Position numbers and translations under genes: made by a program. 64,000 nt of DNA from Thalia democratica (lineage: Eukaryota), in contig OZ241829.1 of the NCBI GenBank assembly GCA_965202585.1, positions 5,146,001-5,210,000 of the forward strand, in the 5' to 3' direction. This document shows positions 2,288 through 50,863 of this stretch, in pieces; position 1 is the first letter of the stretch; every line of letters begins with the position of its first letter. Under the pieces are notes generated by a model, which saw nothing but the letters and a program-made list of their open reading frames with translations, made no database searches and was not told the DNA's origin.

Positions 2288-3137
2288 ATGACTTATGTTA
2301 AGTTGATAAAAGACGCTCAAGATTTCTTCGATCAGAACAAATGCTCTGACGCCATCCGATGCTGGGAGGAAGTTTTAAAACTGGGAAAGTCCCTAAACAG
2401 TGAAGGGTTTGGTCTTATGCTCAAGCCTTACATCAAAATGAAACAAGAATCATTGAGGCGTGTAAGATCTGGTAAGTTTCTTAAGTTTAGTTTAGTAAAA
2501 AAAAAACATATTTTTCTATATCTCAACTATACTGACGTTAAAATTTTAAACTCTAAACAATTTTGAATATTTTTAAAAATTTTGATATTCTTTTAACACT
2601 TAAAAACTATAAATATCTAAAGTCAGTGATTAGAAAACAAATATTATAATCAAAATTTAAAAGTATTTATTTGATTCAACAGGTGAAGATGATGAAGATA
2701 AACATAAGGAAGAAGTGGAACTCAGATGTAAAGAGATATTATACCACATTGATGACTACTTACTCAAAAACGAAAATCGTGTAGATCAGGCGACTTTCGA
2801 GAAGCTTTCAAGGCTCCGTGGCGAATGCTACTGTGATCTCTTCGAAGTAAAAGGCAATAGAAACACTATAGCGCGCATGTTTGGTTTTTACCTTGTGGTA
2901 AAATTTATTTGCTCTTTGCTTTATTTTATTGCTTGCAGGTCAATTCGCTTTCTTGGCAATACTTTGTCCCAGATTTGCTTGACCTTTTTTAATGCTTTTT
3001 GTCAAACTTCATCTTTTACAATAATCTATTGGCAAAAATTTTGTGCAAACTTCAAAAAGTTTTTCCAAACGTCAGAAGGAGAGCATTTGAAGGAAAACAT
3101 GCGCAAGATAGTAAATATAATCCATTTATTTGGATAA
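2288..3137 (+). CDS. T1: small TPR-like helical protein with C-terminal hydrophobic segment, 212 aa, 2 exons (2288-2471, 2683-3137)
   Basis: Donor TCT G|gtaag at 2472 and acceptor caacag|GT GAA at 2682 join two ORF-track pieces in frame (639 nt). KLIKDAQDFFDQNKCSDAIRCWEEVLKL resembles a TPR helix pair. The structure is the same in all 5 copies. The TPR assignment is by eye. Confidence 0.85.
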
Positions 3138-8054: not shown

Positions 8055-11000
8055 ATGGATAAACACCATCCCCAACAATGTTCTGAGGAATTTTATGAAA
8101 ACCAACAACAAAACAGTGGTCAAGCACAAAAGAGAAGTGGTATGCTTGATGATGAAACCGCTAGTTGTAACTTAAAGAGAATTAAAAACGATTTACCTTC
8201 TCAACCTTTTGCAAACTCTCAAAATGATCAGGGTTGTGATGGCTGCATGAACCTATTGAGCTCTGACAAGAGTTCAACTAACCAGCATCAAGTAAACACG
8301 TTGCAACAAATTCCCCAGTCACGTGTTAGTCAACAGTCTCCTGCAAACTATCCATATGTGAGCATCCCTGATCAAAACCAGCCTTATGTTTCGAATTTCC
8401 CAAAAAGTTCTGTTGTTGACACTAACTACCAACTCAAACAAAATTACTTGCCTGATCGAAATCAAGCTGCTGTTTTGAAGCAGCAGCAAAAATGTTTTGA
8501 TGATTCCAACTACAATCGTCAACAACACAACATACCAACTCAAAATCAAGTTCATGATGCGACCTGTCAACAGCAAAGTGTTGATTATGCTACAAACTAT
8601 AGACACCAACATACAAACGTAGTTAACAATCCGATGACGCAACAGCAAAACTTTCAGGGATATCATGATCCGGGAAACAACTTTCAGAACTTCTCACAGA
8701 AGTATACGCATTCAACAAACCAGCAAAACCAGTTTAAAATAAAAGGAAATCATTCTCAGGGATATGACATCCAAAACTTAAGTTTACACGAATATATGTA
8801 TCATCAGTCTAGTATGTCAGTTCCCCAGTCGGTTGTTAATTCACAACAACCAGTTTATCAGTCGATTGTTAACTCTCAACAACCAATTCCTCAGTCGATT
8901 GTTAACTCAGAAATACCAAGTCCTCAGTCGATTGTTAACTCACAACAACCAGTTTATCAGTCGATTGTTAACTTCCAGCAACCAATTAATCAGTCGATTT
9001 TTAACTTCCAACAACCAGCTAATCAGTTGATTGTTAACTTCCAGCAACCAATTTATCAGTCGATTTTTAACTTCCAACAACCAGCTAATCAGTTGATTAT
9101 TAACTTCCAGCAACCAATTTATCAGTCGATTGTTAACCCACAACAGCTTCTTTCAGCAACGAATAAAATGCTGAACTTTGAAAACGATCCTTCGTATAAA
9201 TTACGAAACGATTTTGATCAGCACTACACAACTGGGAGGAGTATTTACAAGGATGATGTGCGAGAAATACTTACAGGTTATAAAAATATGTTTAAATATT
9301 TAAAAGAAGTTAAAATCCTTAAAACTATAAGTAAGCATATATAAACATATTTACATTTATTATTCGTTTTTATGCTTTTCAATGATTTTTTTTAAATACC
9401 AATATTTATTTAAAGTTTTTATTTTAGTTTCATAACTTATACTCTTACATTTGACAATATACTTAACATCAAAACATTCATATTAGTATGATTTTACGGC
9501 TCGTATACTTAAAGGTTAGTCTAAGCTGAAAAAAGAAGTTTTTTTTTTTGTAGTTTTTATTTTTAAGTTTTCAAATTTAATTTTTTTGATTATTTTTTAT
9601 TATGTTTGGGTAAAATTAAAAATAAAAAACTAAAAAAAGATTTAAAATAATTTACTGACCCATCTTTTATTCAGATTTTTTTCAGCTCAGACTGGTCTTT
9701 TAGTACACTTTCTTTTTTGATTTTACTAAAATGCGTTTCAAATCATGCAACTATATATTTTACCAATTTTAAGTTTTTTAATAAGCATTTTGTACCTGAA
9801 TTATTTTTTAAGGTACCCACATAAAAAATGGAGTTAAAGTAAGAGTGAAACATGTGGAATTTGGACAGTATAAATCCCACATGGAAATTCATTGTGGAAA
9901 ACACATTCCAATTGAAGTCTTAATGCACTGGAAAGCTATACACGATGAAGATAAGAACCTGGAAAGCAAAGGTTTATACAGATACGTTTTAATATTTGTT
10001 TTTATATAACAAACTGTTCTAGTTACGTAGGATAATACTATTACTATATATTTTTTGGTAGATTGCAATAAACAATATCTAGAGTATTTACTAACGTGTA
10101 GTCATAGCATTTTAAAAACATTAATTTGCTTTGGTTGTTTATTTAGTAGTTGATATTACAAATTTTTTATAAAAGTCTGCTTGATGTACTGAACTCAATT
10201 ACAATTTTAAAAAGTTTAGTTTCTACATTTCTTTAAATAAAAAGTTTTTAGATCATTATAAAGAAAACATTTTATAAAGTGTTTATATTTTATTTCGACA
10301 ATTTTTACTTCAAGTTAAAGATTTAAAAAGACTTATAAATAGTTTTCAAGTAGTGTTTCAATCCTAATAATAGTAATTTAAAAAATGAAATGTGCTTATG
10401 AATTATAATATGAATTTTTTGTTTTCTTACTTTAAGATAGTATTGCTATATTAAAAGAGCATAGGTTTTGCTAACGTGGCAAGAAAAAAAAAACTATGCT
10501 GTTTTATTTAAAAATGCTTGTAGCTGTTTTAATTTTAGGCATCGTTGAGATGTACGACTTTTTTGTAAAGGATCAGAAACATTATACGATAGTTACCGAA
10601 GAAAGTGAAGGATTTTGTACTTTAAAGAATTTGTAGAAAAACATGGTGTAATGAGTGAAAATACTGCAAAAATTATATTCTTCAAGGTGTGTTAAGATTT
10701 ATTAGAAAATGTTGGTTTTATGCGAATAGTTTTTTGTTAGCCTTTTAAGTAATGTTTATTACCTTATTAAAAACTATATAATTTACAGTATGGTATTCTT
10801 TAATTACTTTACAAAAGCTAGTGAAAACCTGTAAGGGCTTATGTAAGTCAGGGCTCTAAAAAAAAAATTATTAAATTTAAATACTTTCCAAACTTCTACT
10901 AACATACAATAACCGTTAACTAAATATAAAGTAGTTTTAGATATCTCCCTTTTTAGTTTGAGTATTATTTTGGACTAAGAAAATATAACAAATGTAAGCA

Positions 11001-12099
11001 AATCAAACTAATCGTTTTAATTTACAGTTGTGGTCTACCTTAAGAAAAATTCATCAACGAAAAGTTGTTTTGCGAAACATATCTGCTGAAAATATTATGA
11101 TTAACCCTATAACTAAAGAGACTAAATTCTCAAATTTTGATTGTGCTTCTAATTATCGCATAAGTTTACTATTTTTTTATTACATATACACAAATATAAG
11201 TAAACATTTTCATTAATTATTATAATAAAGTATTTTATATATCTAATAATACTTTCAAGTTTAGTATGATTTTTGTCAGTATTTTATTATAAAAACGCTT
11301 TTATAGTATTTGTTTTATTAATATACATTTGATGTAGTTTTTAGTTATATAAAAAAAAATTAAACTTTGGTATTTTTTTACTAAGTAAAATTTATTTCCT
11401 TAACTATTTCAATTAATAAGTTTTTATCACGACAATTAATTTTTTTAATAAATAATTAAAAGAAGTTTAATTTGGTCGTCCAGTATTTGAAGTTTGTATT
11501 AATAGTACGAAAAGTGTTTTAAACAAAACTAACAAAACTTGAAAAATTTACACTTTGCCTTTGCGGTTTACTTTTGTTGTATATTAGTTCAGAGAGTTAA
11601 AACTCATCATTAATCAGTAGTTTATTAACATACTGGTTTTTTTCACTCAACTTAGTTTAAATAAACACCTTTAAATGTAGCCTTGGGTCGCAAACCATTA
11701 TAGTGGACCCGAAGAAACTAAGCCCTTTGTCATTCAGTCGTACTCTGGACCGGAGCACTGCCAACTCCCAGAATTGTTCATCAAAAAGAAATTCTTCGAG
11801 TATGATTTGGATAGATGGAGCATGGGACTTGTTCTCTATTTCATAGTTTTTATTTGAATTGTTTCAATTATTTCGTTACTTTTTTCCTCATTATTTTTAT
11901 TTGTTGTTTTTAGGTTGAGGGCAAACCTGCGTTCAACAGCAAAGAAGAGGTGATCAGTAAGGATCCTGAAGTATCGGAAGCCTGGAGGAATTTTGAGTTG
12001 TTCATCAGGAAACTTCTGAACAAGGACAAGAAAGAGAGGTTCACTCACGCACTCATAACTGGCGGGGTGAAAACTTACCCTTGGTTTGAAGAAAAATAA
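8055..12099 (+). pseudogene. K1: Q/N-rich Pim-like pseudokinase gene, disabled. Exons 8055-9276, 9813-9971, 10539-10686, 11028-11159, 11681-11845, 11914-12099
   Basis: Exon 3 has one A fewer than K2 (TTTAAAGAAT vs TTTAAAAGAAT), giving a stop at 10634-10636. The exon-4 donor reads ATAAGT at 11160 where other copies have GTAAGT. Exon translations align colinearly with the Pim kinase fold. Confidence 0.85.
8826..9155 (+). repeat. 33-bp coding tandem repeat, 10 units (QSIVNSQQPVY-like)
   Basis: 330 bp = 10 x 33; units start CA(G/T)TCGATTGTTAAC. Confidence 0.95.
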
Positions 12100-16335: not shown

Positions 16336-17191
16336 ATGACTCATATTAAGTTGATAAAAGACGCTCAAGATTTCTTCGATCAGAACAAATGCTCTGACGC
16401 CATCCGATGCTGGGAGGAAGTTTCAAAATTGGGAAAGTCCCTAAACAGTGAAGGGTTTGGTCTCATGCTCAAGCCTTACATCAAAATGAAACAAGAATCA
16501 TTGAGGCGTGTAAGATCTGGTAAGTTTCTAAAGTTTAGTTTCGTAAAAAAAACCATAATATTTTTCTATATCTCAACTATACTGACGTTAAAATTTTAAA
16601 CTCCAAACAATTTTGAATATTTTAAAAATTTTGATATTCTTTTAACATTAAAATAACATAAATATCTAAAGTCCGTAATTAGAAAACAAATATTATAATC
16701 AAAATTTAAAGTGTTTATTTTTACTACTATCAACAGGTGAAGATGATGAAGATAAACACAAGGAAGAAGTGGAACTCAGATGTAAAGAGATATTATACCA
16801 CATTGATGACTATTTACTCAAAAACGAAAATCGTGTAGATCAGGAGACTTTCGAGAAGCTTTCAAGGCTCCGAGGCGAATGCTACTGTGATCTCTTCGAA
16901 GTAAAAGGCAATAGAAACACTATAGCGCGCATGTTTGGTTTCTACCTCTTGGTAAAATTTATTTGCTCTTTGGTTTATTCTATTACTCGCTGGTCAATTC
17001 ACTTTCTTGGCAATTTCTTGTCCCAGATTTGCTTGACCTTTTTTATTGTTTTTTGTCAAGTTTCCTGTTACACCTCCACATATTGGCAAAAACTTCGTGC
17101 AAACTTCAAAAAGTTTTTCCAAACGTCGGTAGGAGAGCATTTGAAGGAAAATATGCGCAAGTTAGTAAATATAATCCATTTATTTGGCTAG
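16336..17191 (+). CDS. T2: TPR-like/hydrophobic-tail protein, 212 aa (exons 16336-16519, 16737-17191)
   Basis: Same phase-1 intron as T1; open reading frame intact. Confidence 0.85.
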
Positions 17192-21099: not shown

Positions 21100-22081
21100 T
21101 ATTTACAACTAAAATCATAAGAATTTAAAAAGACCGATGTTTATACTTATGAAAAGTTCAGATTAATTTATAATCAAAACCGAATTGAAACTCTAATTTT
21201 TAAATTTGAATGAAAAAAATAATTTTGTACCGAAAATTTATATATGTTTATATTGTTAATAAAACTGAAACACATACTTATTTTTTCTATTTTTAAATTG
21301 AAACTAGATTTTTGAGATAAGTATTGGAGTGTATCTAATTTAGCTAAAATATCTAAACGTTGAAAAAATTAAAAAAATTGTTTTAACTAGTGGTTAAATG
21401 TTTATTAAAAAATAAAATTAAATCGTTAGTATTAACTTTTTTAAATAGGAGAAAACAAGTTATCTCTGAATTTAATGAACTAGTAAAAGTATTCTTTAGG
21501 TTATACTTGTAACAGTTTTTACATTGGTAACTTTTATTGTGAAAAACATACTATATTAGTGAAGCACAAAATATACAAAGTCGAGATTAGTATATCTTCT
21601 TCTGTTAAGTAATCACAACTTTTTATTTTCTTTCAAATAGTAAATACTCAAATAATTTTACATTTAAATAAAAAATGTTTGAATATGATGTTGAATAAGC
21701 TAATAATTTGTGTAAACACTTATTATAAAAATTTATAAATACTATGTTAATTATTGTGTAATGCTTTTAGAATCATGTTTAACAGTTTAACATATAATTA
21801 ATCACAATATTTACGTTCAAAAGGAATAGGACTTATGTTAATTAGTAAATAATTTTTTAATTATAAGTAAAAATGTATACATTTTAAAATTTTTATATAA
21901 TATTTTATGGAGGTCTATTGTTTCAATGTTTAATGTTTGTTATCTTCAATTTTCTCTAAACTGTAAAGTGTCTAAGTATACAAAAATTTTTTAAAACACA
22001 GTTGATTAGGAATTATTAAAAACAAACTTATACAGAACGTAAATATATATATACATTATATATATATTACCAGAAAAAAAT

Positions 22082-25000
22082 ATGGATAAACACCATCCGC
22101 AACATTGTAATGATGCACATTATCAAAACCTACAACAAAACAGTGGTCAAACACAAAAGAGAAGTGTTATGCTTGATGATGAAACCGCTAGTTGTAACTC
22201 AAAGAGAATTAAAAATGATTTACCCTCTCAACCTTTTGCAAGCTCTCAAAATGATCAGGGTTGTGATGGCTACAACATGAACCTACTAAGCTCTGACAAT
22301 AGTTTAAATAACCAGCATCAAGTTAACACGTTGCAACAAATTCCCCAGTCGCGTGTTGTTCAACAGTCTCCTTCAAACTATCGACATGTGAGCATCCCTG
22401 ATCAAAACCAGCCCTATGTTTCAGATTTCCCTAATATTGACACTAACTACCAACTCAAACAAAATTACTTGCTTAATCAAAATCAAGCTGGTGTTTTGAA
22501 GCAGCAACAAAAATGTTTTGATGATTTCAACTACAGTCGTCAACAACACAACATACCAACTCAAAATCAAGTTCATGATGCGACCTCTCAACAGCAAAGT
22601 GTTGTATATGCTACAAACTATAGACACCAACATACAAACGTAGTTAACAATCCGATGACGCAACAGCAAAACTTTCAAGGATATCATGATCCGGGAAACA
22701 ACTTTCAGAACTTCTCACAGAAGTATACGCATTCAACAAACCAGCAAAACCAGTTTAAAATAAAAGGAAATCATTCTCAGGGATATGACATCCAAAACTT
22801 AAGTTTAAACGAATATATATATCATCAGTCTAGTAAGTCAGATCCCCAGTCGATTGTTAACTCTCAACAACCAATTCCCCATTCGATTGTTAACTCACAA
22901 CAACCAGTTTCTCATTCGATTGTTAACCCACAACAACCAGTTCCTCAGTCGATTGTTAACTCAGAAATACCAAGTCCTCAGTCGATTGTTAACTCACAAC
23001 AACCAGTTTATCAGTCGATTGTTAACTTCCAGCAACCAATTCCTCATTCGATTGTTAACCCACAACAACCAGTTCCTCAGTCGATTGTTAACTCAGAAAT
23101 ACCAAGTCCTCAGTCGATTGTTAACTCACAACAACCAGTTTATCAGTCGATTGTTAACTTCCAGCAACCAGTTTATCAATCGATTTTTAACTTCCAACAA
23201 CCAGCTAATCAGTTGATTGTTAACTTCCAGCAACCAATTTATCAGTCGATTGTTAACCCACAACAGTTTCGTTTAGCAACGAATAAAATGCTGAACTTTG
23301 AAAACGATCCTTCGTATAAATTACGAAACGATTTTGATCAGCACTACACAACTGGGAGGAGGATTTACAAGGATGATGTGCGAGAAATATTTACAGGTTA
23401 TAAAAATATGTTTAAATATTTAAACGAAGTTAAAATCCGTAAAACTAAGAGTAAGCATATATAAACATATTTACATTTATTATTCGTTTTTAGGCTTTTT
23501 AATGATTATTTATTTTAAATACCAATATTTATTTAAAATCTTTATTTTAGTTTCATAACTTATACTCTTACATTTGATAGTATACTTAATATCAAAACAT
23601 TCATTTTAGTATGATTTTACGGCTCGTATACTTAAATGTTAGTCTAAGCTGAAAAAAGAAGTTTTTTTTTTGTTGTTATTATTTTTAAGTTTTCAAATTT
23701 TATTTTTTTGATACTTTTTTATTATTTTTGGGTAAAATTAAAAAAAAAAACTAAAAAAAATTTAAAATAATTTGCTGACCCATCTTTTGATCAGATTTTT
23801 TTAAGCTCAGACTGATCTTTTAGTACACTTTCCTTTTTGATTTTACTAAAATGCGTTTCAAATCATACAACTATATATTTTACCAATTTTAAGTTTTTTA
23901 ATAAGCATTTTGTACCGGAATTTTTATTTAAGGTACCCACATAAAAAATGGAGTTAAAGTAAGAGTAAAACATGTGGAAATTGGACAGTATAAATCCCAC
24001 ATGGAAATTCATTGTGAAAAACACATTCCAATTGAAGTCTTAATGCACTGGAAAGCTATACACGATGAATATAAGAACCTGGAAAGCAAAGGTTTATACA
24101 GATACGTTTTAATAATTTGTTTATATTACAAACTGTTCTAGCTACATAGGATAATACTAATACTATATATTTTTTTGGTAGATTGCAATAAACAATATCT
24201 AGATTATTTATTGACGTATAGTCATAGCATTTTAAAACCATTAATTTGCTTTGGTTGTTTATTTAGTAGTTGATATTACAAATTTTTTCTAAAAGTCTGC
24301 TTGATGTACTGAACTTAATTACAGTTTTAAAAAGTTTAGTTTCTACATTTCTTTAAATAAAAAGCTTTTAAATTATTATAAACAAAACATTTTATAAAGT
24401 GTTTATTTTTTATTTCGACTATTTTTACTTCAAGTTAAAGATTTAAAAAGACTTATAAATAGTTTTCAAGTAGTGTTTCAATCCTAATAATAGTAATTTA
24501 AAAATGAAATGTGCTTATGTATTATAACATGAATCTTTTGTTTTCTTACTTTAAGATAGTTTTACTATATTAAAAGAGCATAGGTTTTGCTAACGTGGCA
24601 AGAAAAAAAAAACTATGCTGTTTTATATAAAAATGCTAGTAGCTGTTTTAATTTTAGGCATCGTTGAGATGTACTACTTTTTTGTAAAGGATCAGAAACA
24701 TTATACGATAGTTACCGAAGAAAGTGAAGGATTTTGTACTTTAAAAGAATTTGTAGAAAAACATGGTGTAATGAGTGAAAATACTGCAAAAATTATATTC
24801 TTCAAGGTGTGTTAAGATTTATTAGAATATGTTGGTTTTATGCGAATAGTTTTTTGTTAGCCTTTTAAGTAATGTTTATTACCTTATTAAAAACTATATA
24901 ATTTACAGTATGGTATTCTTTAATTACTTTACAAAAGCTAGTGAAAACCTGTAAGGGCTTATGTAAGTCAGGGCTCTAAAAAAAAAATTTTTTTATTAAA

Positions 25001-26222
25001 TTTAAATACTTTCCAAACTTCTACTAACATACAATAACCGTTAACTAAATATAAAGTAGTTTTAGATATCTCCCTTTTTAGTTTGAGTATTATTTTGGAC
25101 TAAGAAAAATTAACAAATGTAAGCAAATCAAACAAATCGTTTTAATTTACAGTTGTGGTCTACCTTAAGAAAAATTCTTCAAAGAAAAGTTGTTTTGCGA
25201 AACATATCTGCTGAAAATATTTTGATTAACCCTAGAACTAAAGAGACTAAATTCTCAAATTTTGATTGTGCTTCTAATTATCGCGTAAGTTTACTATTTT
25301 TTTATCACATATACACAAATATAAGTTAAACATTTTCATTAATTATTATAATAAAGTATTTTATATATCTAATAATACTTTCAAGTTTAGTATGATTTTT
25401 ATCAGTGTTTTATTATAAAAACGCTTTTATAGTATTTGTTTTATTAATATACATTTGATGTAGTTTTTAGTTATATAAAAAAATTTAAACTTTGGTATTT
25501 TTTTACTAAGTAAAATTTATTTCTTTAACTATTTCAACTAATAAGTTTTTATCACGACAATTAATTTTTTTAATAAAAAATTTAAAGAAGTTTAATTTGG
25601 TCATCCAGTATTTAAAGTTTGTATTAATAGTACGAAAAGTGTTTTAAACAAAACTAACAAAACTTGAAAAATTTACACTTTGCCTTTGCGGTTTACTTTT
25701 GTTGTATATTAGTTCAGAGAGTTTAAACTCATCTTTAATCACTAGAATATTAACATACTGGTTTTTTTCACTCAACTTAGTTTTAATAAACACTTTTAAA
25801 TGTAGCCTTGGGCCGCAAACCACTATAATGGACCCGAAGGAACTAAGCCCTTCGTCATTCAGTCGTACTCTGGACCGGAGCACTGCCAACTCCCAGAATT
25901 GTTTAACAAAAAGAAATTCTACGAGTATGATTTGGATAGGTGGAGCATGGGACTGGTTCTTTATTTCATGGTTTTTATTTGAATTGTTTCAATTATTTCG
26001 TCTCTTTTTTTCCTCATTATTTTTATTTGTTTTTAGGTTGAGGGCAAACCTGCGTTCAACAGCAAAGAAGAGGTGATCAGTAAGGATCCTGAAGTATCGG
26101 AGGGCTCGAGGAATTTCGAGTTGTTCATCAGGAAACTTCTGAACAAGGAGAAGAAAGAGAGGTTCACTCACGGACTCATAACTGGCGGGGTGAAAGCTCA
26201 CCCTTGGTTTAAAGAAAAATAG
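22082..26222 (+). CDS. K2: intact Q/N-rich, repeat-containing Pim-family pseudokinase, 701 aa. Exons 22082-23396, 23933-24091, 24658-24806, 25153-25284, 25806-25970, 26037-26222
   Basis: All junctions are GT-AG and phase-consistent (2106 nt in total). VRVKHVE and PIEV match Pim VAIKHVE and PMEV; LRNISAEN replaces HRDIKDEN; NFD replaces DFG; QLPE...DRWSMGLVLY matches subdomains VIII-IX; ends HPWFKEK. The exon-1 donor was chosen by gap-free alignment to Pim; an alternative in-frame donor lies 54 nt downstream. Confidence 0.85.
22847..23275 (+). repeat. 33-bp coding tandem repeat, 13 units
   Basis: 429 bp = 13 x 33. Confidence 0.95.
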
Positions 26223-29200
26223 TTTTGTTTAACAGTAATACTACACCTAATTTAAAACGAGTATTTGTTACTTAAAAAAAAAAAACAATTTCTTCCAAAC
26301 AGTTCCAATTGTTCAATAACTGTTGAAACTTGTACTTCAGAAAGTTATTTTTACTGAAACTAAGTATATATATTTGAACTGTTTAGCTAATAAAAAAAAA
26401 TAACATTTAAACTAGTGCAATTTTCTGAAGTTTTTTTCCACGAATGACTTGATAATTTCTTTTAAAAAACTGATAAGTTTAAAAAATAGTGACACATTTT
26501 AATGAATTAATAATGTTTTTGAATTAATGCTTTTAGCTAATGTTTGACTAACAGATAAAGTTGTAATTGAGCTTTTTTAGTAAATACTTTTTATATAGTA
26601 ACACGTATTATGATTTTTGCTAAGTAACTATTTTTAAACTTTTACTTGTATAAGACCTTGAAAAATAGAAGTTTAATGAATTTAAGTTTATAATAATTAA
26701 TTTAGGTGTTGGTAAAATGATTTTTTTTGCACACATTATATCCGTTCTATGTTGATTTTGTTAAACTGCATAGATATACTTATTTGCAATGACGTCAAAC
26801 TATAACAGTTATACAAATTTAAATATACACTTAACTATGTTTTTTTCTTCGTTTTTTTACGGTACGTAAAAAAAATAACTTCTTTAGAAAACAAAGTGAT
26901 AAGTTGTTTTTAACTTTTATAATCCAGTGGAATTTAAGTAAATTCATAAGTTTATTATTACTTTTTTTATTTAAATGTTAACTTTAACTCAAAGATGAAG
27001 CTCATTTAGTAAACAAATAATCCTGTTAACAAAATTATGCTACTCGAATTTTTTACAGATTTCATTAACTTCCTTAAGAACAAAACAGTATATACTTAAG
27101 TTATTTAAATGTTACTTAATGAAAACGTTGATAAAACTTTACTGTTAAAGTACAAATCTTTCCTATTCGCAGGGTCAACTTATTATCAGAAATGTCATCT
27201 TCAGGTCGAACTTCTTTAAAAGTATTCTTTGTTTTTATTAATTTTATTTAAAAAATATAAAAGCACTTTAAAATGAAAGTTGGATTGAAATAATCATTCA
27301 ATAAAACTGCTTTTAGAAGCAATTAAACTAAGAGAGCATTTAAAATCCTTTTTATTTGGACAAAAAAATTGTTTAGTTTGCAGTTGTTATTAAGTTTAAA
27401 ACAAATTGCTGACTTTACTTTAGAAACTCCAGAAATTGTACAATATCTTTATGCGATGCGAAAACTACAATTATTTAATATACTCAGCTATTTACTTCTT
27501 TATTTATGTATAAAGTGATTAAAACTAATCAAAAATTGAGAAAATCTAAATTTATTTACATAGATTTTTTAAAAACTTTAATACTAATTAAAACCATTTT
27601 TTTAAGTTTAAATAAATAATTAAAAATAATTAAAACCTATTTTTTTTATTTTCTAAAAAAAATACAAAATATATTCTTAAACTTAATAAAAGGTGTAAAA
27701 AATTAATTTATACAACCTTTAAGACTGCAGAATTAAAAACGTTAAATTGTGTTATAAAAAAGTCCGTAATTATGAAGGTAGTTTGAGATTGTTTCAAACT
27801 AAAAAAAAGATACTAAAATTAAGAAGTTTAGCCTTTATTATCAACATAGGTAAAAACAAAGATTAACTATTTAACATAAACGGTCTCAATAAAGTACTAC
27901 TAAAGAGTCAAATGTAATAGTTTAGTTAGATGAGATTAATTAATTTATTTTTAAACTAATAAATACTTGAATTTCAAACTAAATAAGTTTTAGAAATAAA
28001 AACGAAATACAAGTCATGGTGATCAACGAGTAATTGTACCTTAATTAAAATTACTCTACCTTCTTGAGTATACAATTAAACCAACGATCCTTGTGTATAC
28101 CCGGCTTATCGTTTAACAGCCGATTTATTAACATCTCGAACAAACTGCCAAGCATTAGAATTGAATTATATCAGCATTGAAACCTGTTTTAAAATAAAAC
28201 AGAAAACGTTTTGTCTCATTATTTTTAAATTAACTGAAACATATCATGCTGAATAAAATATTTTACTAACTTCTTAAATAAAGTAAATAAAATTTATCAC
28301 TTCCAAGGTATTTAAATTTGAAAATACTAAAAATTTTGATACAAAATTTACAATATGTAAGCAATGAAAAAACACACCTTCGCCTGAACCTTATAGCTTT
28401 CACCTAAATTATAATTTTAAATTAGTAACTTAACTAGAAATTGCTTTAATTAAAATTTTATCTGATAAATAAATAAATAAAAACACTAAGTTTGAACTAT
28501 ATAATTGCTTACTTACTTAAGAACGTATTTATCAATGGAACTAAGTTTTAGATTAGTCATCACAGTAATTTTAAATATCAAATAATAGGCTGTATATTTA
28601 TACAAAAAAACAAACTTAATAAAAATTTCTTCAATCTGTTTAAATAATTCGAAGTCATGTTAAAATAAACGGTATAAAAAATTCAAGTTAGTATTTACAA
28701 AAGTTATCGAACTGTATATCAACGAAAATTTAACGAGTTCGAAAAAAAAAATCATAAAAAAGTCACAGTGGTTATCGAGCATCTAAATATGCTTTAACTT
28801 TACTAAATAAACAACTCTACTTATTAAACAACTCTACTTATTAAACAAGGGTAAATAACCAGGTTTTGAACCCAACATCCAACTAAACAAACAGAATAAT
28901 AAAACACAAAATCTAACAAGCATTCAGACAACGGAGAAGCTTATATCTTTATTATATAAAAACAACCACATAATATTGTATTTAATTTAAAAAAATAACT
29001 GCAAAATTTTACGTGTTTAAATTATTTAAGCTAGTTTTAAAAAATAATCTCATTTTAATATTTTGTGCAAAACATAACAAATGTTTAAAGTTGTCCAATT
29101 CTTAAGCTTGTATAATTTACTTTTTTATAAACTTCCCTGTTTTCTCTACATATACAGTCTTTTAATTTTAATTTTAACACTTTTTAACAAAAGTAAAAAT

Positions 29201-30637: not shown

Positions 30638-31503
30638 ATGACTCATAATAAGTTGATAAAAGACGCTCAAGATTTCTTCGATCAGAACAAATGCACTGAC
30701 GCCATCCAATGCTGGGAGGAAGTTTTAAAATTGGGAAAGTCCCTAAACAGTGAAGGGTTTGGTCTCATGCTCAAGCCTTACATCAAAATGAAACAAGAAT
30801 CATTGAGGCGTGTAAGATCTGGTAATTTTCTAAAGTTTAGTTTAGTAAAAAGAACCATAATTTTCTCATCATAAAATAATCTTAACAACCACAATTTTTT
30901 TTTATACTCAACTTTATTGACGTTCCAATTTAAACCCTATCAATTAATTTTGAAAATTAAAGATTTTGATATTTTTATAAAACTTTTTCTTAATAAGTTA
31001 ATTAAAGTTACAGGTGAGGAAATAAAAAATATTATAATCAAAATTTAAAATGTTTATTTTTACTACTATCAACAGGTGAAGAAGATGAGGATAAACACAA
31101 GGAAGAAGTGGAACTCAGATGTAAAGAGTTATTATACCACATTGATGACTACTTACTCAAAAACGAAAATCGTGTGGATCAGGGGACTTTCGAGAAGCTT
31201 TCAAGGCTCCGAGGCGAATGCTACTGTGACCTCTTCGAAGTAAAAGGCAATAGAAACACTATAGCACGCATGTTTGGTTTTTACCTCTTGGTAAAATATA
31301 TTTGCTCTTTGATTTATTCTATTACTCGCAGGTCAATTCGCTTTCTTGGCAATTTCCTGTCCCAGATTTGCTTGACCTTTTTTATTGCTCTTTTCCAAAT
31401 TTCATCTTTCAGCTCTAAATATTGGCAAAAACTTTGTTCAAACTTCAAAAAGTTTTTCCAAACGTCAGAAGGAGAGCATTTGAAGGAAAATATGCACAAT
31501 TAG
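30638..31503 (+). CDS. T3: TPR-like/hydrophobic-tail protein, 203 aa (exons 30638-30821, 31076-31503)
   Basis: Same intron; ends ...ENMHN*, 9 aa shorter than T1, T2 and T4. Confidence 0.85.
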
Positions 31504-36615: not shown

Positions 36616-37468
36616 ATGACTCACATTAAGTTGATAAAAGACGCTCAAGATTTCTTCGATCAGAACAAATGCTCTGACGCCATCCGATGCTGGGAGGAAG
36701 TTTTGAAATTGGGAAAGTCCCTAAACAGTGAAGGGTTTGGTCTCATGCTCAAACCTTACATCAAAATGAAACAAGAATCATTGAGGCGTGTAAGATCTGG
36801 TAAGTTTCTTAAGTTGAGTTCAGTAAAAAAAAACATAATATTTTTCTATATCTCAACTATACTGACGTTAAAATTTTAAACTCTAAACTATTTTGAATAT
36901 TTTTTAAAATTTGGATATTTATAGTTTTTTAAATGTTAAAAGAATATGTCAGTGATTAGAAAACAGATATTATGATCAAAATTTAAAATGTTTATTTTTA
37001 CTACTATCAATAGGTGAAGATGATGAAGATAAACACAAGGAAGAAGTGGAACTCAGATGTAAAGAGTTATTGTACCACATTGATGATTACTTACTAAAAA
37101 ACGAAAATCGTGTAGATCCGGGGACTTTCGAGAAGCTTTCAAGGCTTCGAGGCGAATGCTACTGTGATCTCTTCGAAGTGAAAGGCAATAGAAACACTAT
37201 AGCGCGCATGTTTGGTTTTTACCTCCTGGTAAAATCTATTTGCTCTTTGGTTTATTCTATTACTCGCGGGTCAATCCGCTTTCTTGGCAATTCTTTGTCC
37301 CAGATTTGCTTCACTTTTTTTATAGCTTTTTGCCACATTTCATCTGTCACAACAACCTGTTGGCAAAAGCCTCGTGCAAACTTCAAAAAGTTTTTCCAAA
37401 CATCAGAAAGAGAGCATTTAAAGGAAAATATGTGCAAGTTAGTAAATATAATCCATTTGTTTGGATAA
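36616..37468 (+). CDS. T4: TPR-like/hydrophobic-tail protein, 212 aa (exons 36616-36799, 37014-37468)
   Basis: Same phase-1 intron; ORF intact. Confidence 0.85.
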
Positions 37469-40462: not shown

Positions 40463-41166
40463 AAAAGAGAAGTGGTATGCTTGATGATGAAACCGCTAGT
40501 TGTAACTCAAAGAGAATTAAAAATGATTTACCCACTCAAACTTTTGCAAGCTTTAAAAGTGATCAGGGTTGTGATGACTACAACATGAACCTACTAAGCT
40601 CTGAAAATAGTTCAATTGACCAGCATCAAGTAAACATGATGCAACAAACTGTTCCCCAGTCGCGTGTTGTTCAACAGTCTCCTGCAAACTATCGACATGT
40701 GAGCATCCCAGATCAAAACCAGCCTTATGTTTCGAATTTCCCAAACAATTTTGGTGTTGATTCTAACCGCCAACACAAACAAAATTACTTGCCTGATCGA
40801 AATCAAGCTGCTGTTTTGAAGCAGCAACAAAAATGTTTTGATGATTCCAACTACAGTCGTCAACAACACAACATACCAACTCAAAATCAAGTTCATGATG
40901 CGACCTGTCAACAGCAAAGTGTTCAATATGCTACAAACTATAGACACCAACATACAAACGTAGTTAACAATCCGATGACGCAACAGCAAAACTTTCAGGG
41001 ATATCATGATCCGGGAAACAACTTTCAGAACTTCTCACAGAAGTATACGCATTCAACCAACCATCAAAACCAGTTTAAAATTAAAGGAAATCATTCTCAG
41101 GGATATGACATCCAAAACTTAAGTTTAAACGAATATATGTATCATCAGTCTAGTAAGTCAGATCCC

Positions 41167-42220
41167 CAGTCGGTTGGTAATTCACAACAACCAGTTTATC
41201 AGTCGATTGTTAACTCTCAACAACCAATTCCCCATTCGATTGTTAACTCACAACAACCAGTTCCTCATTCGATTGTTAACCCACAACAACCAGTTCCTCA
41301 GTCGATTGTTAACTCAGAAATACTAAGTCCTCAGTCGATTGTTAACTCACAACAACCAGTTTATCAGTCGATTGTTAACTTCCAGCAACCAATTAATCAG
41401 TCGATTGTTAACCCACAGCAACCAGTTCCTCAGTCGATTGTTAACTCACAACAACCAGTTTATCAGTCGATTGTTAACTCAGAAATACCAGTTCCTCATT
41501 CGATTGTTAACTCACAACAACCAGTTTATCAGTCGATTGTTAACCCACAACAACCAGTTCCTCAGTCGATTGTTAACTCACAACAACCAGTTTATCAGTC
41601 GATTGTTAACTCAGAAATACCAGTTCCCCATTCGATTGTTAACTCACAGCAACCAGTTTCTCATTCGATTGTTAACCCACAACAACCAGTTCCTCAGTCG
41701 ATTGTTAACTCAGAAATACCAAGTCCTCAGTCGATTGTTAACTCACAACAACCAGTTTATCAGTCGATTGTTAACTTCCAGCAACCAATTAATCAGTCGA
41801 TTGTTAACCCACAACAACCAGTTCCTCAGTCGATTGTTAACTCAGAAATACCAAGTCCTCAGTCGATTTTTAACTTCCAACAACCAGCTAATCAGTTGAT
41901 TGTTAACTTCCAGCAACCAATTTATCAGTCGATTTAATCCACAACAACCAGTTCCTTAGTCGATTGTTAACTCAGAAATACCAAGTCCTCAGTCGATTTT
42001 TAACTTCCAACAACCAGCTAATCAGTTGATTATTAACTTCCAGCAACCAATTTATCAGTCGATTGTTAACTCCCAACAACCCGCTTATCAGTCGATTGTT
42101 AACTTCCAGCAACCAGTTAGTCAGTTGATTTTTAACTTCTAACAACCAGCTAATCAGTTGATTATTAACTTCCAGCAACCAATTTATCAGTCGATTGTTA
42201 ACCCACAACAGCTTCTTTCA
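41167..42220 (+). repeat. 33-bp tandem repeat, 32 units minus 2 nt
   Basis: 1054 bp = 32 x 33 - 2. Confidence 0.9.
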
Positions 42221-44520
42221 GCAACGAATAAAATGCTGAACTTTGAAAACGATCCTTCGTATAAATTACGAAACGATTTTGATCAGCACTACTCAACTGG
42301 GAGGAGTATTTACAAGGATGATGTGCGAGAAATATTTACAGGTTACAAAAATATGTTTAAATATTTCAACGAAGTTAAAATACGTAAAACTAAAAGTAAG
42401 CATATATAAACATATTTACATTTATCATTCGTTTTTAGGCTTTTTAATGATTATTTTTTTTAAATACCAATATTTATTTAAAGTCTTTATTTTAGTTTCA
42501 TAACTTATACTCTTACATTTGATAGTATACTTAACATCAAAACATTCAAGTTTTAAAGTATTTTTAAATATATATCGTTATTTAAAAGAAATTAAAATCT
42601 TCAAAACAAAAAACAAGCGTATATAAACATACTCGTTTTTAAGATTTTTAGTTAAATTTTGTTTAAATGTCGATATTTTATTTAGAGTGTTTACTTTAGT
42701 TCTGTTTAATCTTAAGACTATTCTCATAGTCACAATATTATATCAAAAAAATTACTAAACATCTAAAGATTCAACTCAGTATGATTTTTGGCTGGTATAC
42801 TTAACGGTCAGTCTAAGCTAAAACAAGCTGAGTCAGAAAAAAAAAGCATTTAATTTCAATATTTTAAACTTTATTTTTTGATTCTTTTTTGATATAATTT
42901 GGTAATGTATAAATAAAAGAATAAAAACAAGCTTTAAAACAATTTTCTTATTCAGGTTATATTCAGCTCACATTGATCTTTAAGTATACTATCCTGTATT
43001 AAGTATTTAAGTATATATATAATTTTATACTTTACGCATTTTAAGTTATTTTAATAAAGATTTTGTACCGGAATTTTAAATTTAAGGTACCCATATAAAA
43101 AATGGATTTAAAGTAAGAGTGAAACATGTGGAAATTGGACAGTATAAATCTCACATGGAAATTCATTGTGGAAAACACATTCCAATTGAAGTCTTAATGC
43201 ACTGGAAAGCTATACACAATGAAGATAAGAACTTGGAAAGCAAAGGTTTATACAGATACGTTTTAATATTTGTTTTTTTATTACAAACTGTTCTAGTTAC
43301 GTAGGACAATACTATTACTAAGTATTTTTGGTAGATTGCCATAAACAATATCTAGAGTATTTACTGACAAATAGTCTAAGCAGTTTTAAAATATAAATTT
43401 TGTTTTAGATGTTTATTTAGTAGTTGATATTTTTTTTACTAGTCTTTTTAGTCTACTTGTTAAACTGAAGTTAATTAGAATTTCAAAAACTTTAACTTCA
43501 AAGAATCTTGAAATAGAAAGTTTTTAGATTATTATAAAAAAAAGATTTTATAAAAAGTTTGTCGTTTTTTTGGTAAATTTTACTTTAAATTTAAGATTTT
43601 ACTTCAAAGTGACCTTTAAATAGTTTATGAAAAAAATTTTAAGTAGTGTTTCAATCCTAAAAGTAGTAATTTAAAAACGAAATGTGCTTATGCATTATAC
43701 TATGAATCTTTTATTTTCTTACTTTAAAATAGTTTTGCTATATCAAAAATGCATAAGTTTTGTTAACGTGGTGAGAAAAAAAAACATACTGTTTAATATA
43801 AAATTATTAATAGCTATTTTTATACTAGGCGTGGTTGAGATGTACGACTTTTTTGTAAAGGATCAGAAAAATTATACGATAGTTACCGAAGAAAGTGAAG
43901 GGTTTTATACTTTGAAAGAATTTGTAGAAAAACATGGTGTAATGAGTGAAAATACTGCAAAAAACATATTCTTCGAGGTGTGTTAAGATTTAATACAATA
44001 TGTTGGTTTTATACAAATAGCTATTTGTTAATCTCCTAAGTTACGTTTATTAACTGACAAAAAACTGTTATAATTTACAGTATGTTTTATTAATTTATAA
44101 AAGCTAGTGAAAACCTGTAAGGGCTTATGTAAGTCAGTATTCTACAAATATAGTCTTTTATTAGTAAGTTTAAACACTTTTCAAACTTCTTTTTAGTTTG
44201 AGTATTATTTTGGACTAAGAAATAATAACAAATGTAAGCAAATCAAACAAATTGTTTTTATTTACAGTTGTGGTCTACCTTAAGAAAAATTCACCAAAGA
44301 AAAGTTGTTTTGCGAAACAAATCTGCTGAAAATATTTTGATTAACCCTAGAACTAAAGAGACTAAATTCTCAAATTTTGATTGTGCTTCTCATTATCGCG
44401 TAAGTTTACTCGTTGTTTATTATATATATATATATACAAAAAGATTTGCACAAATATAAGCTAAAAGTTTTCATCTATTTTTAAAATAACTATACAAATA
44501 GATTAATGCAAATTGTATAT

Positions 44521-44574
44521 TTTATTCGCGACCGGTTTCGGTGGCAAGAGATTGCGACCTTTTCAAGCAAAAAA
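44521..44574 (-). ncRNA. Minimal type I hammerhead ribozyme motif (U3-A8 variant) in intron 4 of K3
   Basis: Minus strand reads TTTTTTGC-TTGAAAA-GGTCGCAA-TCTC-TTGCCACC-GAAA-CCGG-TC-GCGAATAAA. Stem II has 7/8 pairs, the helix-III loop is the palindrome CCGG, the cleavage triplet is GUC and stem I pairs. Absent from the same intron in other copies. Confidence 0.8.
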
Positions 44575-46758
44575 TAACAAAATTAATTTTACTGTTTACT
44601 TTACGGTTTACTTTTGCTGCATATTAGTTCAAATTTTTTAAAACTAATTCATAATAAATCAATAATTTATAAACATACTCGTTTTTTTACTCAACTTAGT
44701 TTTAATAAACACTTTTAAATGTAGTCTTGGGCAGCAAACCACTATAGTGGACCGGAAGGAACTAAGCCCTTTGTCATTCAGGCGTACTCTGGACCCGAAA
44801 GCTTCCAACTCCCAGAATTGTTCAACAAAAAAAAATTCTACGAGTATGATTTGGATAGGTGGAGCATGGGACTGGTTCTCTATTTCATGGTTTTTATTTG
44901 AATTGTTTCAGTTTGTTATTTTATTTTTTTGAACTTTTTTCCTCAATATTTTTATTTGTTGTTTTTAGGTTGAGGGCAAACCTGCGTTCAACAGCAAAGA
45001 AGAGGTGATCAGTAAGGATCCTGAAGTATCGGAGGGCTCGAGGAAATTCGAGTCGTTCATCAGGAAACTTCTGAACAAGGACAAGAAAGAGAGGTTCACT
45101 CACGCACTCATAACTGGCGGGGTGAAAGCTCATCCTTGGTTTAAACAAAAATAATTAGATTTAACAGTAATAATACATCTAAAATATAATTGATTTGTTA
45201 CTTTTGTAACATGTTTTCCTTTCTAAAATTAGTTCCAATTGTTCAATAGTTGTTTTAAACTTGTATTTTAAAAACTGAAACGAAGTATATATCTTAAATG
45301 TATTTAAGTGGTTGTTTAAATAACATTTAAACTAGTGTAATTTTTTGAAATATTTTGTATCAATGATTTTCTAAGATTTTTTGGAAACTGATGAACTTAA
45401 ACAACAGTGACAAATGTACATGTATTAATGATGTTTTAGATGTATAATATGTTGAAAAATAAAAATTTAAGTGGTCTAAATTTGTAATGACTCACTTAGT
45501 TGTTTGTAAAATAATTTTTTGCACAGATATCCGTTCTATTTTGATTTTGTTAGACTGCGTAGATACACTTGATTGCAATGACTTCGAGTTATGGTAACTA
45601 TAATAAAATTTACACTAAACTATATATTTGTTCGCTTTTTTTTTTAAGAGAAGTAAAACAAAATTCTTAGAAATGATGTAGTTACTTGTTGTTAACTCTT
45701 ATACTCCAGGAAAGTTTGTCTGTGTTTTATTTTTTTTTTCTTTCAAATTGAAAGTTAACTCAACTCAGAAATGAAGGTATACTAGTAAACAAATATAACT
45801 ATTAACAAAATTATGCTACGTTATTACTTAACAGGTTTTACTAAATGCCTTAGCAACAAAATAATATGTACTTAAGTTATTAACATGTTGCTTCCTAAAA
45901 ATGTTAAAAAATCTTGCTGTTAAAGTAGAAATGGGCAATTTTTCCTACTTTCAGTGTTAATTAGTTAATAAAATATAAAGTTAAATATAATTGTATATTC
46001 TTCTTCGGGTCGAATTTTTAAAAATTCTTTTCTCTAATCATTAATTGTTGTATTAAAAGTATAAAAGTACTTTAAAGCTAATATTACAATTTTATAACTA
46101 TATAATAAAACTTCTATAACTACCAATCAAACCGAGAGCAAATTGTAAAACATTATTTGTGGACAAAATAAATAAAAGCTTCTATAGTTTGCTTTTATTG
46201 TTAAATAAAAAAACAAATCGCTGGCTGTATTTTAAAAACTTAAAAAATTGTACAAAAGTTTTTGATGTAATGCAAAAACTATAGTTACATAATTTACTCA
46301 GCTATTTAGTTCTTAAGTAATTTGAAGTGATTGAAGTAATAAAAAATTGAGAAAATCTAAGCTTATTTACATAAATTCTTTTAAAATCCTAATACTAATT
46401 GAAAATATTTTTTAATAAGTATAGACAAATAATTAAAAATATTTAAAACCTAATACTAAAAAAATGACAAAAAAGATACTTAAACTTAAAAAATGGTATA
46501 CAAAACTAATTTATTCAACCTTTACGACTACAGAACTAAAAACATTTAATTGTGATATAAAACAGTCTGTAAACAATAAAGGTAGTTTTAGATTATTTTG
46601 AATTTTAAGAAAACTTACTAAAATTAAGAAGTTTAGCACTTTATTATTACGGAGAAAAGCAGAGATTAATTATTTAAGATAAACAATGTTACGAACGAGT
46701 CAAATGCAATAATTTAGATCAGATTAAAACATTTATAAACAAACTAATAATTTAGTTA

Positions 46759-50023: not shown

Positions 50024-50863
50024 ATGACTCATAATAAGTTGATAAAAGACGCTCAAGATTTCTTCGATCAGAACAAATGCTCTGACGCCATCCGATGCTG
50101 GGAGGAAGTTTTAAAATTGGGAAAGTCCCTAAACAGTGAAGGGTTTGGTCTCATGCTTAAGCCTTACATCAAAATGAAACAAGAATCATTGAGGCGTGTA
50201 AGATCTGGTGAGATATTTTAATATATCTTATAGAAGGAACTTTATATTTTTTTCCTTATACCAAATGTATTGGCATTTCTATTTTGTACTGAATAAACTA
50301 ATTTTGAATTTTTATATTAAAGATTTTGATATTCTTATAACACTTTTTGTTAATAAAATAATTTAAGTCGGAGGTTAGGAAATAAAAATTAATTTATTCA
50401 AAATTTAAAATGTTTATTTTTACTACTATCAACAGGTGAAGATGATGAAGATAAACACAAGGAAGAAGTGGAACTCAGATGTAAAGAGTTATTATACCAC
50501 ATTGATGACTACTTACTCAAAAACGAAAATCGTGTAGATCAGGAGACTTTCGAGAAGCTTTCAAGGCTCCGAGGCGAATGCTACTGTGATCTCTTCGAAG
50601 TAAAAGGCAATAGAAACACTGTAGCGCGCATGTTTGGTTTTTACCTCTTGGTAAAATTTATTTGCACTATGGTTTATTCTATTACTCGTGGGTCAATTCG
50701 ATTTCTTGGCAATTTCTTGTCCCAGATTTGCTTGACCTTTTTTATTGCTCTTTGCCAAATTTCATCTTCCAGCTCCACATATTGGCAAAAACTTTGTTCA
50801 AACTTCAAAAAGTTTTTTCAAACGTTAGAAGGAGAGCATTTGAAGGAAAATATGCACAATTAG
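50024..50863 (+). CDS. T5: TPR-like/hydrophobic-tail protein, 203 aa (exons 50024-50207, 50436-50863)
   Basis: Donor G|gtgag; ends ENMHN* like T3. Confidence 0.85.

Follow-up and report, generated by a model that had tools for sequence, protein, structure and literature searches.

An apparently intact gene of a probable Pim-derived pseudokinase clade in a tandem array of Thalia democratica

The window analysed here, which is free of N, is a stretch of 64,000 nucleotides of Thalia democratica, C5:5146001-5210000 (C5 being contig OZ241829.1), from an 802-Mb, AT-rich (~26% GC), intron-bearing animal genome. On its forward strand, the gene at positions 22082-26222, hereafter W2, has six exons with GT..AG borders according to direct translation of 21500-26300. 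With a probability that we put at about 0.72, W2 is an intact gene of a Pim-derived pseudokinase clade that would have lost catalysis stepwise, in which the sister gene L040 is strongly and the tandem array weakly constrained, and whose members would act by binding. W2 is probably a real, functional member of this clade, which would have arisen inside a large lineage-specific expansion of Pim-like kinases with a common gene architecture. Its protein would combine a glutamine/asparagine/proline-rich (Q/N/P-rich) N-terminus carrying ~13 copies of an 11-residue repeat with a dead protein-kinase-fold domain.

The residues of this domain predict that it is unable to transfer phosphate. Two of the three canonical catalytic residues, the HRD Asp and the DFG Asp, are absent, together with the catalytic-loop Lys, the whole Gly-rich loop and the Thr of the P+1 loop. 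The Gly-rich loop, GEGGQGS in intact paralogues, is replaced by IYKDDVR near the end of exon 1 (23363-23383). In all 13 close copies found in the genome, HRDxKxxN is replaced by LRN(I/K)SAEN (VVLRNISAEN in W2, 25195-25218; LRNKSAEN in the window copy W3), with His, Asp and Lys gone and the Asn retained. DFG is likewise replaced in 13/13 copies, mostly by NFD (25258-25266 in W2), by NYD in L036 and by KFD in the broken copy L039. The motif replacements reported by the initial annotation (YKDDVR, LRN(I/K)SAEN and NFD) were reproduced by direct translation in the four copies of the window and, with these variants, in the 13 copies of the genome. The elements it described as retained were also found in W2 and, with minor variants, across the 13 copies: the beta3 Lys in VRVKHVE (codon 23968-23970), the alphaC Glu in IPIEV (24034-24036), DxWSxG as DRWSMG (25935-25952) and the terminal HPW (26199-26207).

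The activation segment, from NFD to LPE, is extended as the same annotation had described, with 40 residues in W2 versus 26 in Pim-1 and L040, and contains the duplicated SGPE-like motif as HYNGPE (25821-25838) and SYSGPE (25863-25880). The 14 additional residues look like the product of a 42-nucleotide tandem duplication (HYNGPEGTKPFVIQ / SYSGPEHCQLPELF). In the alignment to PIM-1 through the paralogue L045, SGPEHCQLPELF aligns to DGTRVYSPPEWI and the APE equivalent is the LPE of QLPELF (25890-25898). SGPE aligns instead with the Pim DGTR or 'GT' motif, which means that the Thr of the P+1 loop has been lost too and is now Pro. The hinge reads TEESEGF in the 13-copy family versus MEKPKGF in intact paralogues and MEKPKEF in L040, the Pim hinge Pro being replaced.

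Retention of the kinase fold is suggested by colinear motif and profile matches only. Searched exon by exon, the Pfam Pkinase profile (PF00069) gave weak scores of 13-15 bits each (E-values, E, of 0.02-0.06; cut-off 31.7 bits) that are colinear over profile positions 60-263: exon 3 covers positions 60-104, exon 4 positions 110-148 and exon 6 positions 222-263, and a further match spans positions 160-191. The same profile scored 25.5 bits on the L040 C-lobe and 36.2 bits on the intact paralogue L045. In tblastn and HMMER searches, each W2 exon also matched paralogues whose HRD..DFG is intact (E 1e-5 to 1e-14) and whose intron positions are shared.

These paralogues form the background from which the clade would have emerged. 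Pim-like kinases with intact HRD(I/V)KxEN..DFG occupy at least 60 loci, many of them in tandem clusters; those numbered L015-L030 and L041-L046 lie on C1, C2 (16.2-16.5, 24.5 and 81.4-84.8 Mb), C4 (50.64-50.75 Mb), C6, C8 (25-28 Mb), C9 and C10. The intact paralogues examined share with the pseudokinase a long Q/N/P-rich first exon, of 300-400 residues in these paralogues, and a phase-1 intron right after the Gly-rich loop. Against the PDB, the top 41 matches of the L045 C-lobe piece were all PIM-1 (E 3.5e-6; the next was PKC-theta, 2.6e-4), and 42 of 42 matches of its hinge piece were PIM-1 or PIM-2. Genome-wide, L040 and W2 exon 4 have Pim-like paralogues as their closest relatives, and a partitioned protein tree built without a non-Pim outgroup split the 13 copies plus L040 from the intact paralogues (ultrafast bootstrap 100), with L040 basal. 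The support for a Pim ancestry of the pseudokinase is nevertheless indirect only, the term 'Pim-derived' being transitive because it rests on genome-wide nearest neighbours and on the gene structure in common with the intact paralogues. W2 itself lacks a best match to PIM, the hinge proline and the catalytic residues; judged from its residues, the pseudokinase is a derivative of the Pim family and not a working member.

The sister gene L040 gives this loss an order. Located at C7:14.56 Mb as a single copy, it has five exons, a Q/N-rich exon 1 and all splice sites intact; it shares the RLAT(S/N)KM motif with the family, and its degenerate Gly-rich loop PLFYDKVVQYYTG aligned with IYKDDVREIFTG. 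Its catalytic motifs are HRNIKAEN and NYD, so that both Asp residues are absent throughout the clade (LRN in 13/13 copies and HRN in L040; NFD, NYD or KFD in the copies and NYD in L040), in agreement with the pseudokinase assignment of the initial annotation. L040 retains the HRD His, the catalytic-loop Lys, the hinge MEKP, GT..PPEW and an activation segment of normal length. W2 and L040 are 43% identical over 274 aligned residues, and their synonymous sites are saturated (proportion of synonymous differences, pS, 0.75).

L040 is also devoid of the last intron of W2 (intron 5, 66 nucleotides, 25971..26036). The GT and AG of this intron are retained in 13/13 copies and the intron occurs only in the 13-copy family, while exons 5 and 6 form one fused exon in L040 and in intact paralogues; it looks like a gain specific to the tandem family. 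An in-frame TGA inside intron 5 means that splicing is required for exon 6 to be read.

The simplest reading of the differences between L040 and the family is a two-step order. In the first step, before L040 split off, the Gly-rich loop would have been lost and both catalytic Asp residues changed to Asn. In the second, on the stem of the 13-copy family, the HRD His, the catalytic-loop Lys, the hinge Pro and the GT Thr would have been lost, 14 residues duplicated and the 66-nucleotide intron gained.

Constraint on L040 could be measured against public metagenomes. An exhaustive protein search and a word search found P0001, from a Tara Oceans scaffold, 62% identical to L040 over the C-lobe. The relatives of L040 lie on short Tara Oceans contigs, L047 (scaffold_441287) and L048, one of them 62% identical and one near-identical in exons. 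L048 (ERZ907791, PRJEB4352; ERR1726895 k127_133065; 904 bp) is a close orthologue with the same HRNIKAEN and NYD. Compared with L048, L040 has diverged by 4-10% in its exons and by 25-31%, with indels, in the flanking introns; with a dN of 0.029 and a dS of 0.276, the dN/dS ratio (omega) of the pair is 0.105 (Fisher p = 4e-8). L040 is under strong purifying selection, and as the dead motifs are kept at this omega, the sister lineage shows strong conservation, between species, of a Pim-like domain that is catalytically dead.

The array to which W2 belongs presents a more mixed picture. Four tandem copies were found in the window by tblastn: W1 (8055-12099), W2, W3 (40477-45154) and W4 (56782-60798), all on the forward strand. 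A search with exon 4 recovered 13 close copies genome-wide, eight in the C5 cluster (5.157-5.267 Mb), one at C5:4.83 Mb, two on C155 and two on C10. One more partial copy, with matches to exons 5 and 6 at C5:5226868-5227240, was missed by the exon-4 search. Below, group A comprises W1, W2, W4 and L033-36, and group B comprises W3, L031, L032, L037 and L039; L038 is divergent.

W2 is the only intact copy in the window. W1 has a 1-nucleotide deletion in exon 3 (~10630), seen in the alignment and as tblastn high-scoring segment pairs split between different frames, and has AT instead of GT at the donor of intron 4. W3 is disabled in exon 1, which is 5'-truncated, with the ATG region replaced; the repeat array of this exon also contains a 1-nucleotide deletion (~41934) and two nonsense codons (~41957 and ~42140), and the kinase exons of W3 are open. 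W4 has an open exon 1 and a 1-nucleotide deletion in exon 5 (~60425). What had been described for all copies is thus correct for the motifs, three of the four copies being disabled. Genome-wide, about seven of the 13 copies appear intact (W2, L032, L033, L034, L036, L037 and the divergent L038). The disabling lesions are private to single copies, so each of them is recent, and 128 of 130 splice dinucleotides are retained across the copies. Single-base frameshifts occur in W1, W4, L035 and L039, and several of them fall within short homopolymers.

Selection tests were run per exon, with likelihood terms or counts summed. The maximum-likelihood omega of the array is 0.56 (profile-likelihood interval ~0.45-0.69; MG94-F3x4 on the exon tree), and omega = 1 is rejected (p = 1.3e-7), also when the long L038 branch is set aside. 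Pairwise omega values obtained by the Nei-Gojobori method (NG86) range from 0.2 to 0.77, with 0.47 pooled and 0.28-0.68 per exon; as a control, seven catalytically intact paralogues of similar divergence on C2 gave a pooled NG86 omega of 0.27. Some copies in this C2 cluster of intact paralogues also have a stop or a frameshift. Allowing separate omega values for internal, intact-terminal, broken-terminal and L038 branches did not improve the fit over a single omega. Indel events per kb number 5-9 in exons versus 31-54 in introns. Between groups A and B, introns diverge by ~0.27 and exons show a dN of 0.045 and a dS of 0.13. In the same pairs, introns have diverged about two times as much as synonymous sites in the flanking exons (0.10-0.15), an excess for which exon-biased gene conversion, synonymous-site constraint or misaligned low-complexity introns are possible causes. 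When the W2 coding sequence was mutated neutrally at K = 0.02-0.05 per lineage, 2.9-7.2 stops accumulated, with a probability of no stop of 0.054-0.002. Purifying selection on the tandem array is weak, and the array, about half of whose members are disabled, is a young birth-and-death family.

The proposal that the fold is kept under selection, made in the initial annotation, therefore holds for the clade, given the omega of L040 and its identity with W2, and in a weaker form for the array. Its suggested dN/dS check returned an omega below 1, yet no difference between intact and broken copies.

Several observations weigh against our reading. First, as regards the Pim ancestry, W2 exons 2, 3, 4 and 6, searched singly against the PDB, returned nothing useful and no Pim; the exon-3 profile of the clade matched TLK2 there and not Pim, and the search with the L040 C-lobe placed PIM-2 second, at E 0.0055, among many kinases. 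The label 'Pim-derived' used in the initial annotation is thus borne out by the matches of the intact paralogues to PIM-1 and PIM-2 and by the common gene architecture, and not by the pseudokinase exons themselves. Secondly, 6/13 copies carry disabling lesions, and an omega of 0.56 is high for a kinase domain and does not distinguish intact from broken terminal branches (0.54 vs 0.58). In the youngest group, variable sites are near-flat over codon positions (0.141, 0.138 and 0.164, with introns at 0.20). Thirdly, in three runs (from two studies, type unrecorded) covering 22000-26400, introns were covered like exons and no GT..AG joint was found at an exon border; as the contigs of these runs span introns without exon-exon joints, they represent DNA and are silent on expression. 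Finally, a word-indexed protein search with the 456-residue exon-1 open reading frame (ORF) and W2 exon 4, and a scan of JGI metagenomes with exon 6, found no relatives of the 13-copy family outside this genome, although these are weak blanks.

Much of this evidence would also fit an alternative that we consider improbable, namely that the whole array including W2 consists of non-functional, decaying duplicates, that only L040 or a copy outside the array is functional, and that the motif losses reflect common descent. The frameshift, nonsense and splice lesions in three of the four window copies and in nearly half of those in the genome, the equal omega on intact and broken terminal branches, the near-flat substitution across codon positions and the missing exon-exon joints all speak for it. 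It is opposed by the rejection of omega = 1, by the seven frames of ~700 codons that stay open in a 26%-GC genome where 3-7 stops per copy would be expected neutrally, by N-terminal indels that are all in-frame, by the near-complete retention of splice sites, by a divergence between groups A and B that is ~4-fold lower in exons than in introns, and by the private, and so recent, nature of the lesions.

The preferred reading, of an intact pseudokinase acting by binding, also has to be set against a residual use of the nucleotide pocket. Very probably not, but conceivably, the domain still binds nucleotide as a non-catalytic switch, as STRAD-alpha and HER3 do, or performs weak atypical catalysis through the beta3 Lys, the alphaC Glu and the catalytic-loop Asn. 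VRVK, IPIEV and the Asn of ..SAEN show little or no variation among the copies and are also present in L040, and the Phe of DFG is retained in most copies; yet bulky and acidic residues now occupy the Gly-rich loop, and neither the catalytic base Asp nor the catalytic-loop Lys nor the Mg-binding DFG Asp remains.

It is similarly doubtful that the kinase-like domain is a passenger and that selection acts mainly on the Q/N-rich repeat N-terminus, for example in a condensate-forming or structural protein, which would leave the dead domain under loose constraint: the exon-1 ORF is open over 400-620 codons in nearly all copies, even those with broken kinase exons, repeat number varies between copies and intact paralogues have the same kind of N-terminus, but the non-repeat part of the N-terminal region is less constrained (omega 0.70, with in-frame indels only) than the kinase exons (0.47), W3 is the opposite case, in which exon 1 is broken and the kinase exons are open, and the kinase exons of L040 are strongly constrained.

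Exon 1 of W2 (22082..23396) begins with an ATG (MDKHHPQ...) conserved in W1, W2, W4 and L033-36, and the gene thus starts upstream of 23300, the first position of the feature in the initial annotation. It encodes a Q/N/P-rich region of ~250 residues, followed by the repeat array and the start of the kinase-like domain, within an ORF of 22082..23464. The array, at 22839-23265, consists of 12.9 copies of a 33-nucleotide (11-residue) tandem repeat (Tandem Repeats Finder, period 33). The repeat is QQPVxQSIVNS-like, its copy number varies among paralogues, and the array is also present in exon 1 of L031, L032, L037 and L039. In group B, an additional Q/N/S-rich insert of ~200 residues brings the exon-1 ORFs to more than 600 codons. 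The N-terminus of the W2 protein is probably disordered.

Exon 1 most likely ends at 23396, at the donor ACAG/GTTATA, which gives a coding sequence of 2,106 nucleotides and a protein of 701 residues. In L040 and in 5/5 intact paralogues examined, exon 1 ends in phase 1 within a Gly codon just past the strand of the Gly-rich loop (..SV(Y/F)SG/gt), and the ACAG/GT donor homologous to 23396 is retained in 12/13 copies. With this donor, the spacing between the Gly-rich loop and beta3 in W2 equals that of Pim-1. The 54 nucleotides downstream (YKNMFKYLNEVKIRKTKS, 23397..23450), coding in the first reading, are probably the start of intron 1, because of the homologous upstream donor in L040 and in all intact paralogues examined and of the indels and stop within this stretch: in half of the copies (group B) it carries +9/+10-nucleotide indels and a stop codon, and has ATAAG where the downstream GT donor would be. 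Likewise, YKNMFKYLNEVKIRKTK, presented as coding in the initial annotation, is probably intronic, since exon 1 most likely ends before it. The strong donor at 23450 as the end of exon 1, with which five further copies would look broken, was dropped given the homologous 23396-type donor in L040 and every intact paralogue. As a second in-frame donor (23450/GTAAGC), it could yield a longer isoform in W2.

The remaining exons, all on the forward strand, divide the kinase-like domain as follows. Exon 2 (23933..24091), whose AG acceptor and GT donor are present in 13/13 copies, contains the beta3 Lys and the alphaC Glu. Exon 3 (24658..24806) covers beta4-beta5, the hinge and alphaD, and exon 4 (25153..25284) carries the degenerate catalytic loop and NFD. 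Exon 5 (25806..25970) encodes the duplicated SGPE-like motif, LPE and DRWSMG, and exon 6 (26037..26222) the C-lobe helices, with a TAG stop at 26220-26222.

Between the copies, ORFs of 131-140 residues recur (2715-3137, 16769-17191, 37046-37468, 31108-31503 and 50468-50863), so that the duplicated unit carries at least one further gene; they matched no Pfam family at useful E-values.

Compared with PIM-1/2/3 of the CAMK group, the pseudokinase keeps V-x-V-K-H-V-E at the beta3 Lys, P-x-E-V in alphaC, ENIL-x-N/D...K after the catalytic loop, a PPE-like LPE, D-x-W-S-x-G and the C-terminal HPW, and L040 additionally resembles Pim in its hinge Pro (MEKP) and GT..PPEW. Unlike PIM-1/2/3, the pseudokinase has no Gly-rich loop, HRD Asp or Lys, DFG Asp, hinge Pro or P+1 Thr, its activation segment is 14 residues longer, and it has a Q/N-rich, repeat-bearing N-terminal extension of ~400 residues; we know of no such extension in vertebrate Pim kinases. 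Teleost pim-related (pimr) genes are a large lineage-specific tandem expansion of Pim-like kinases; the expansion described here is similar, but independent and in a different animal lineage. Catfish multi-kinase proteins were among the distant matches. In the literature searched we found no Pim-derived pseudokinase and no relevant tunicate or Hydra Pim expansion.

Pseudokinases make up about one tenth of animal kinomes, and most derive from active paralogues. Tribbles (TRIB1-3) and other CAMK-like pseudokinases have a kinase fold of CAMK-like ancestry with a degenerate Gly-rich loop and an altered DFG and serve as adaptors or scaffolds acting by binding; our family differs in being lineage-specific, tandemly amplified and fast-evolving. 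Pairs of dead and active kinase paralogues, such as JAK JH2, HER3-HER2, STRAD-LKB1, KSR-RAF, FAM20A-FAM20C and IRAK3, are the usual setting for allosteric or competitive regulation. In this genome, too, a dead paralogue occurs beside active ones of the same family, here as an analogy only. For two of these examples, FAM20A activates FAM20C (PMC5865150) and IRAK3 is an allosteric negative regulator (PMC7955167).

By analogy with such pairs, the dead domain would work by binding, most likely by partnering or competing with active Pim-like paralogues or their substrates, and the common Q/N-rich N-terminus could bring dead and active paralogues together. A specific role as scaffold, decoy or allosteric regulator, as the initial annotation proposed, is one that we infer. 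A more ambitious version, which we regard as unlikely, is that this is an undescribed Pim-derived pseudokinase clade of a pelagic marine animal in which the array, its prion-like repeat N-termini and the co-amplified neighbour gene supply diversifying decoys or regulators of active Pim-like kinases; a conflict-driven process such as immunity or self/non-self recognition would be a possible setting.

For annotation, the family carries a warning: motif conservation over tandem copies reflects common descent, and most of the copies neighbouring W2 are broken. The Tara contigs with L040 relatives suggest a pelagic marine source, and public metagenomes would contain related species. The dead fold looks useful, given its strongly conserved older single-copy relative, with an array that is fast-evolving and half decayed. 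On the more ambitious version, the genome would hold a stepwise series leading from active kinase through the conserved, half-degenerate, single-copy L040 to the fully degenerate tandem array. Active parents, an older, strongly constrained dead sister and a young, partly decayed dead array stand together in one genome, a set that can serve as a natural series for asking which features of the kinase fold persist after catalysis is lost.

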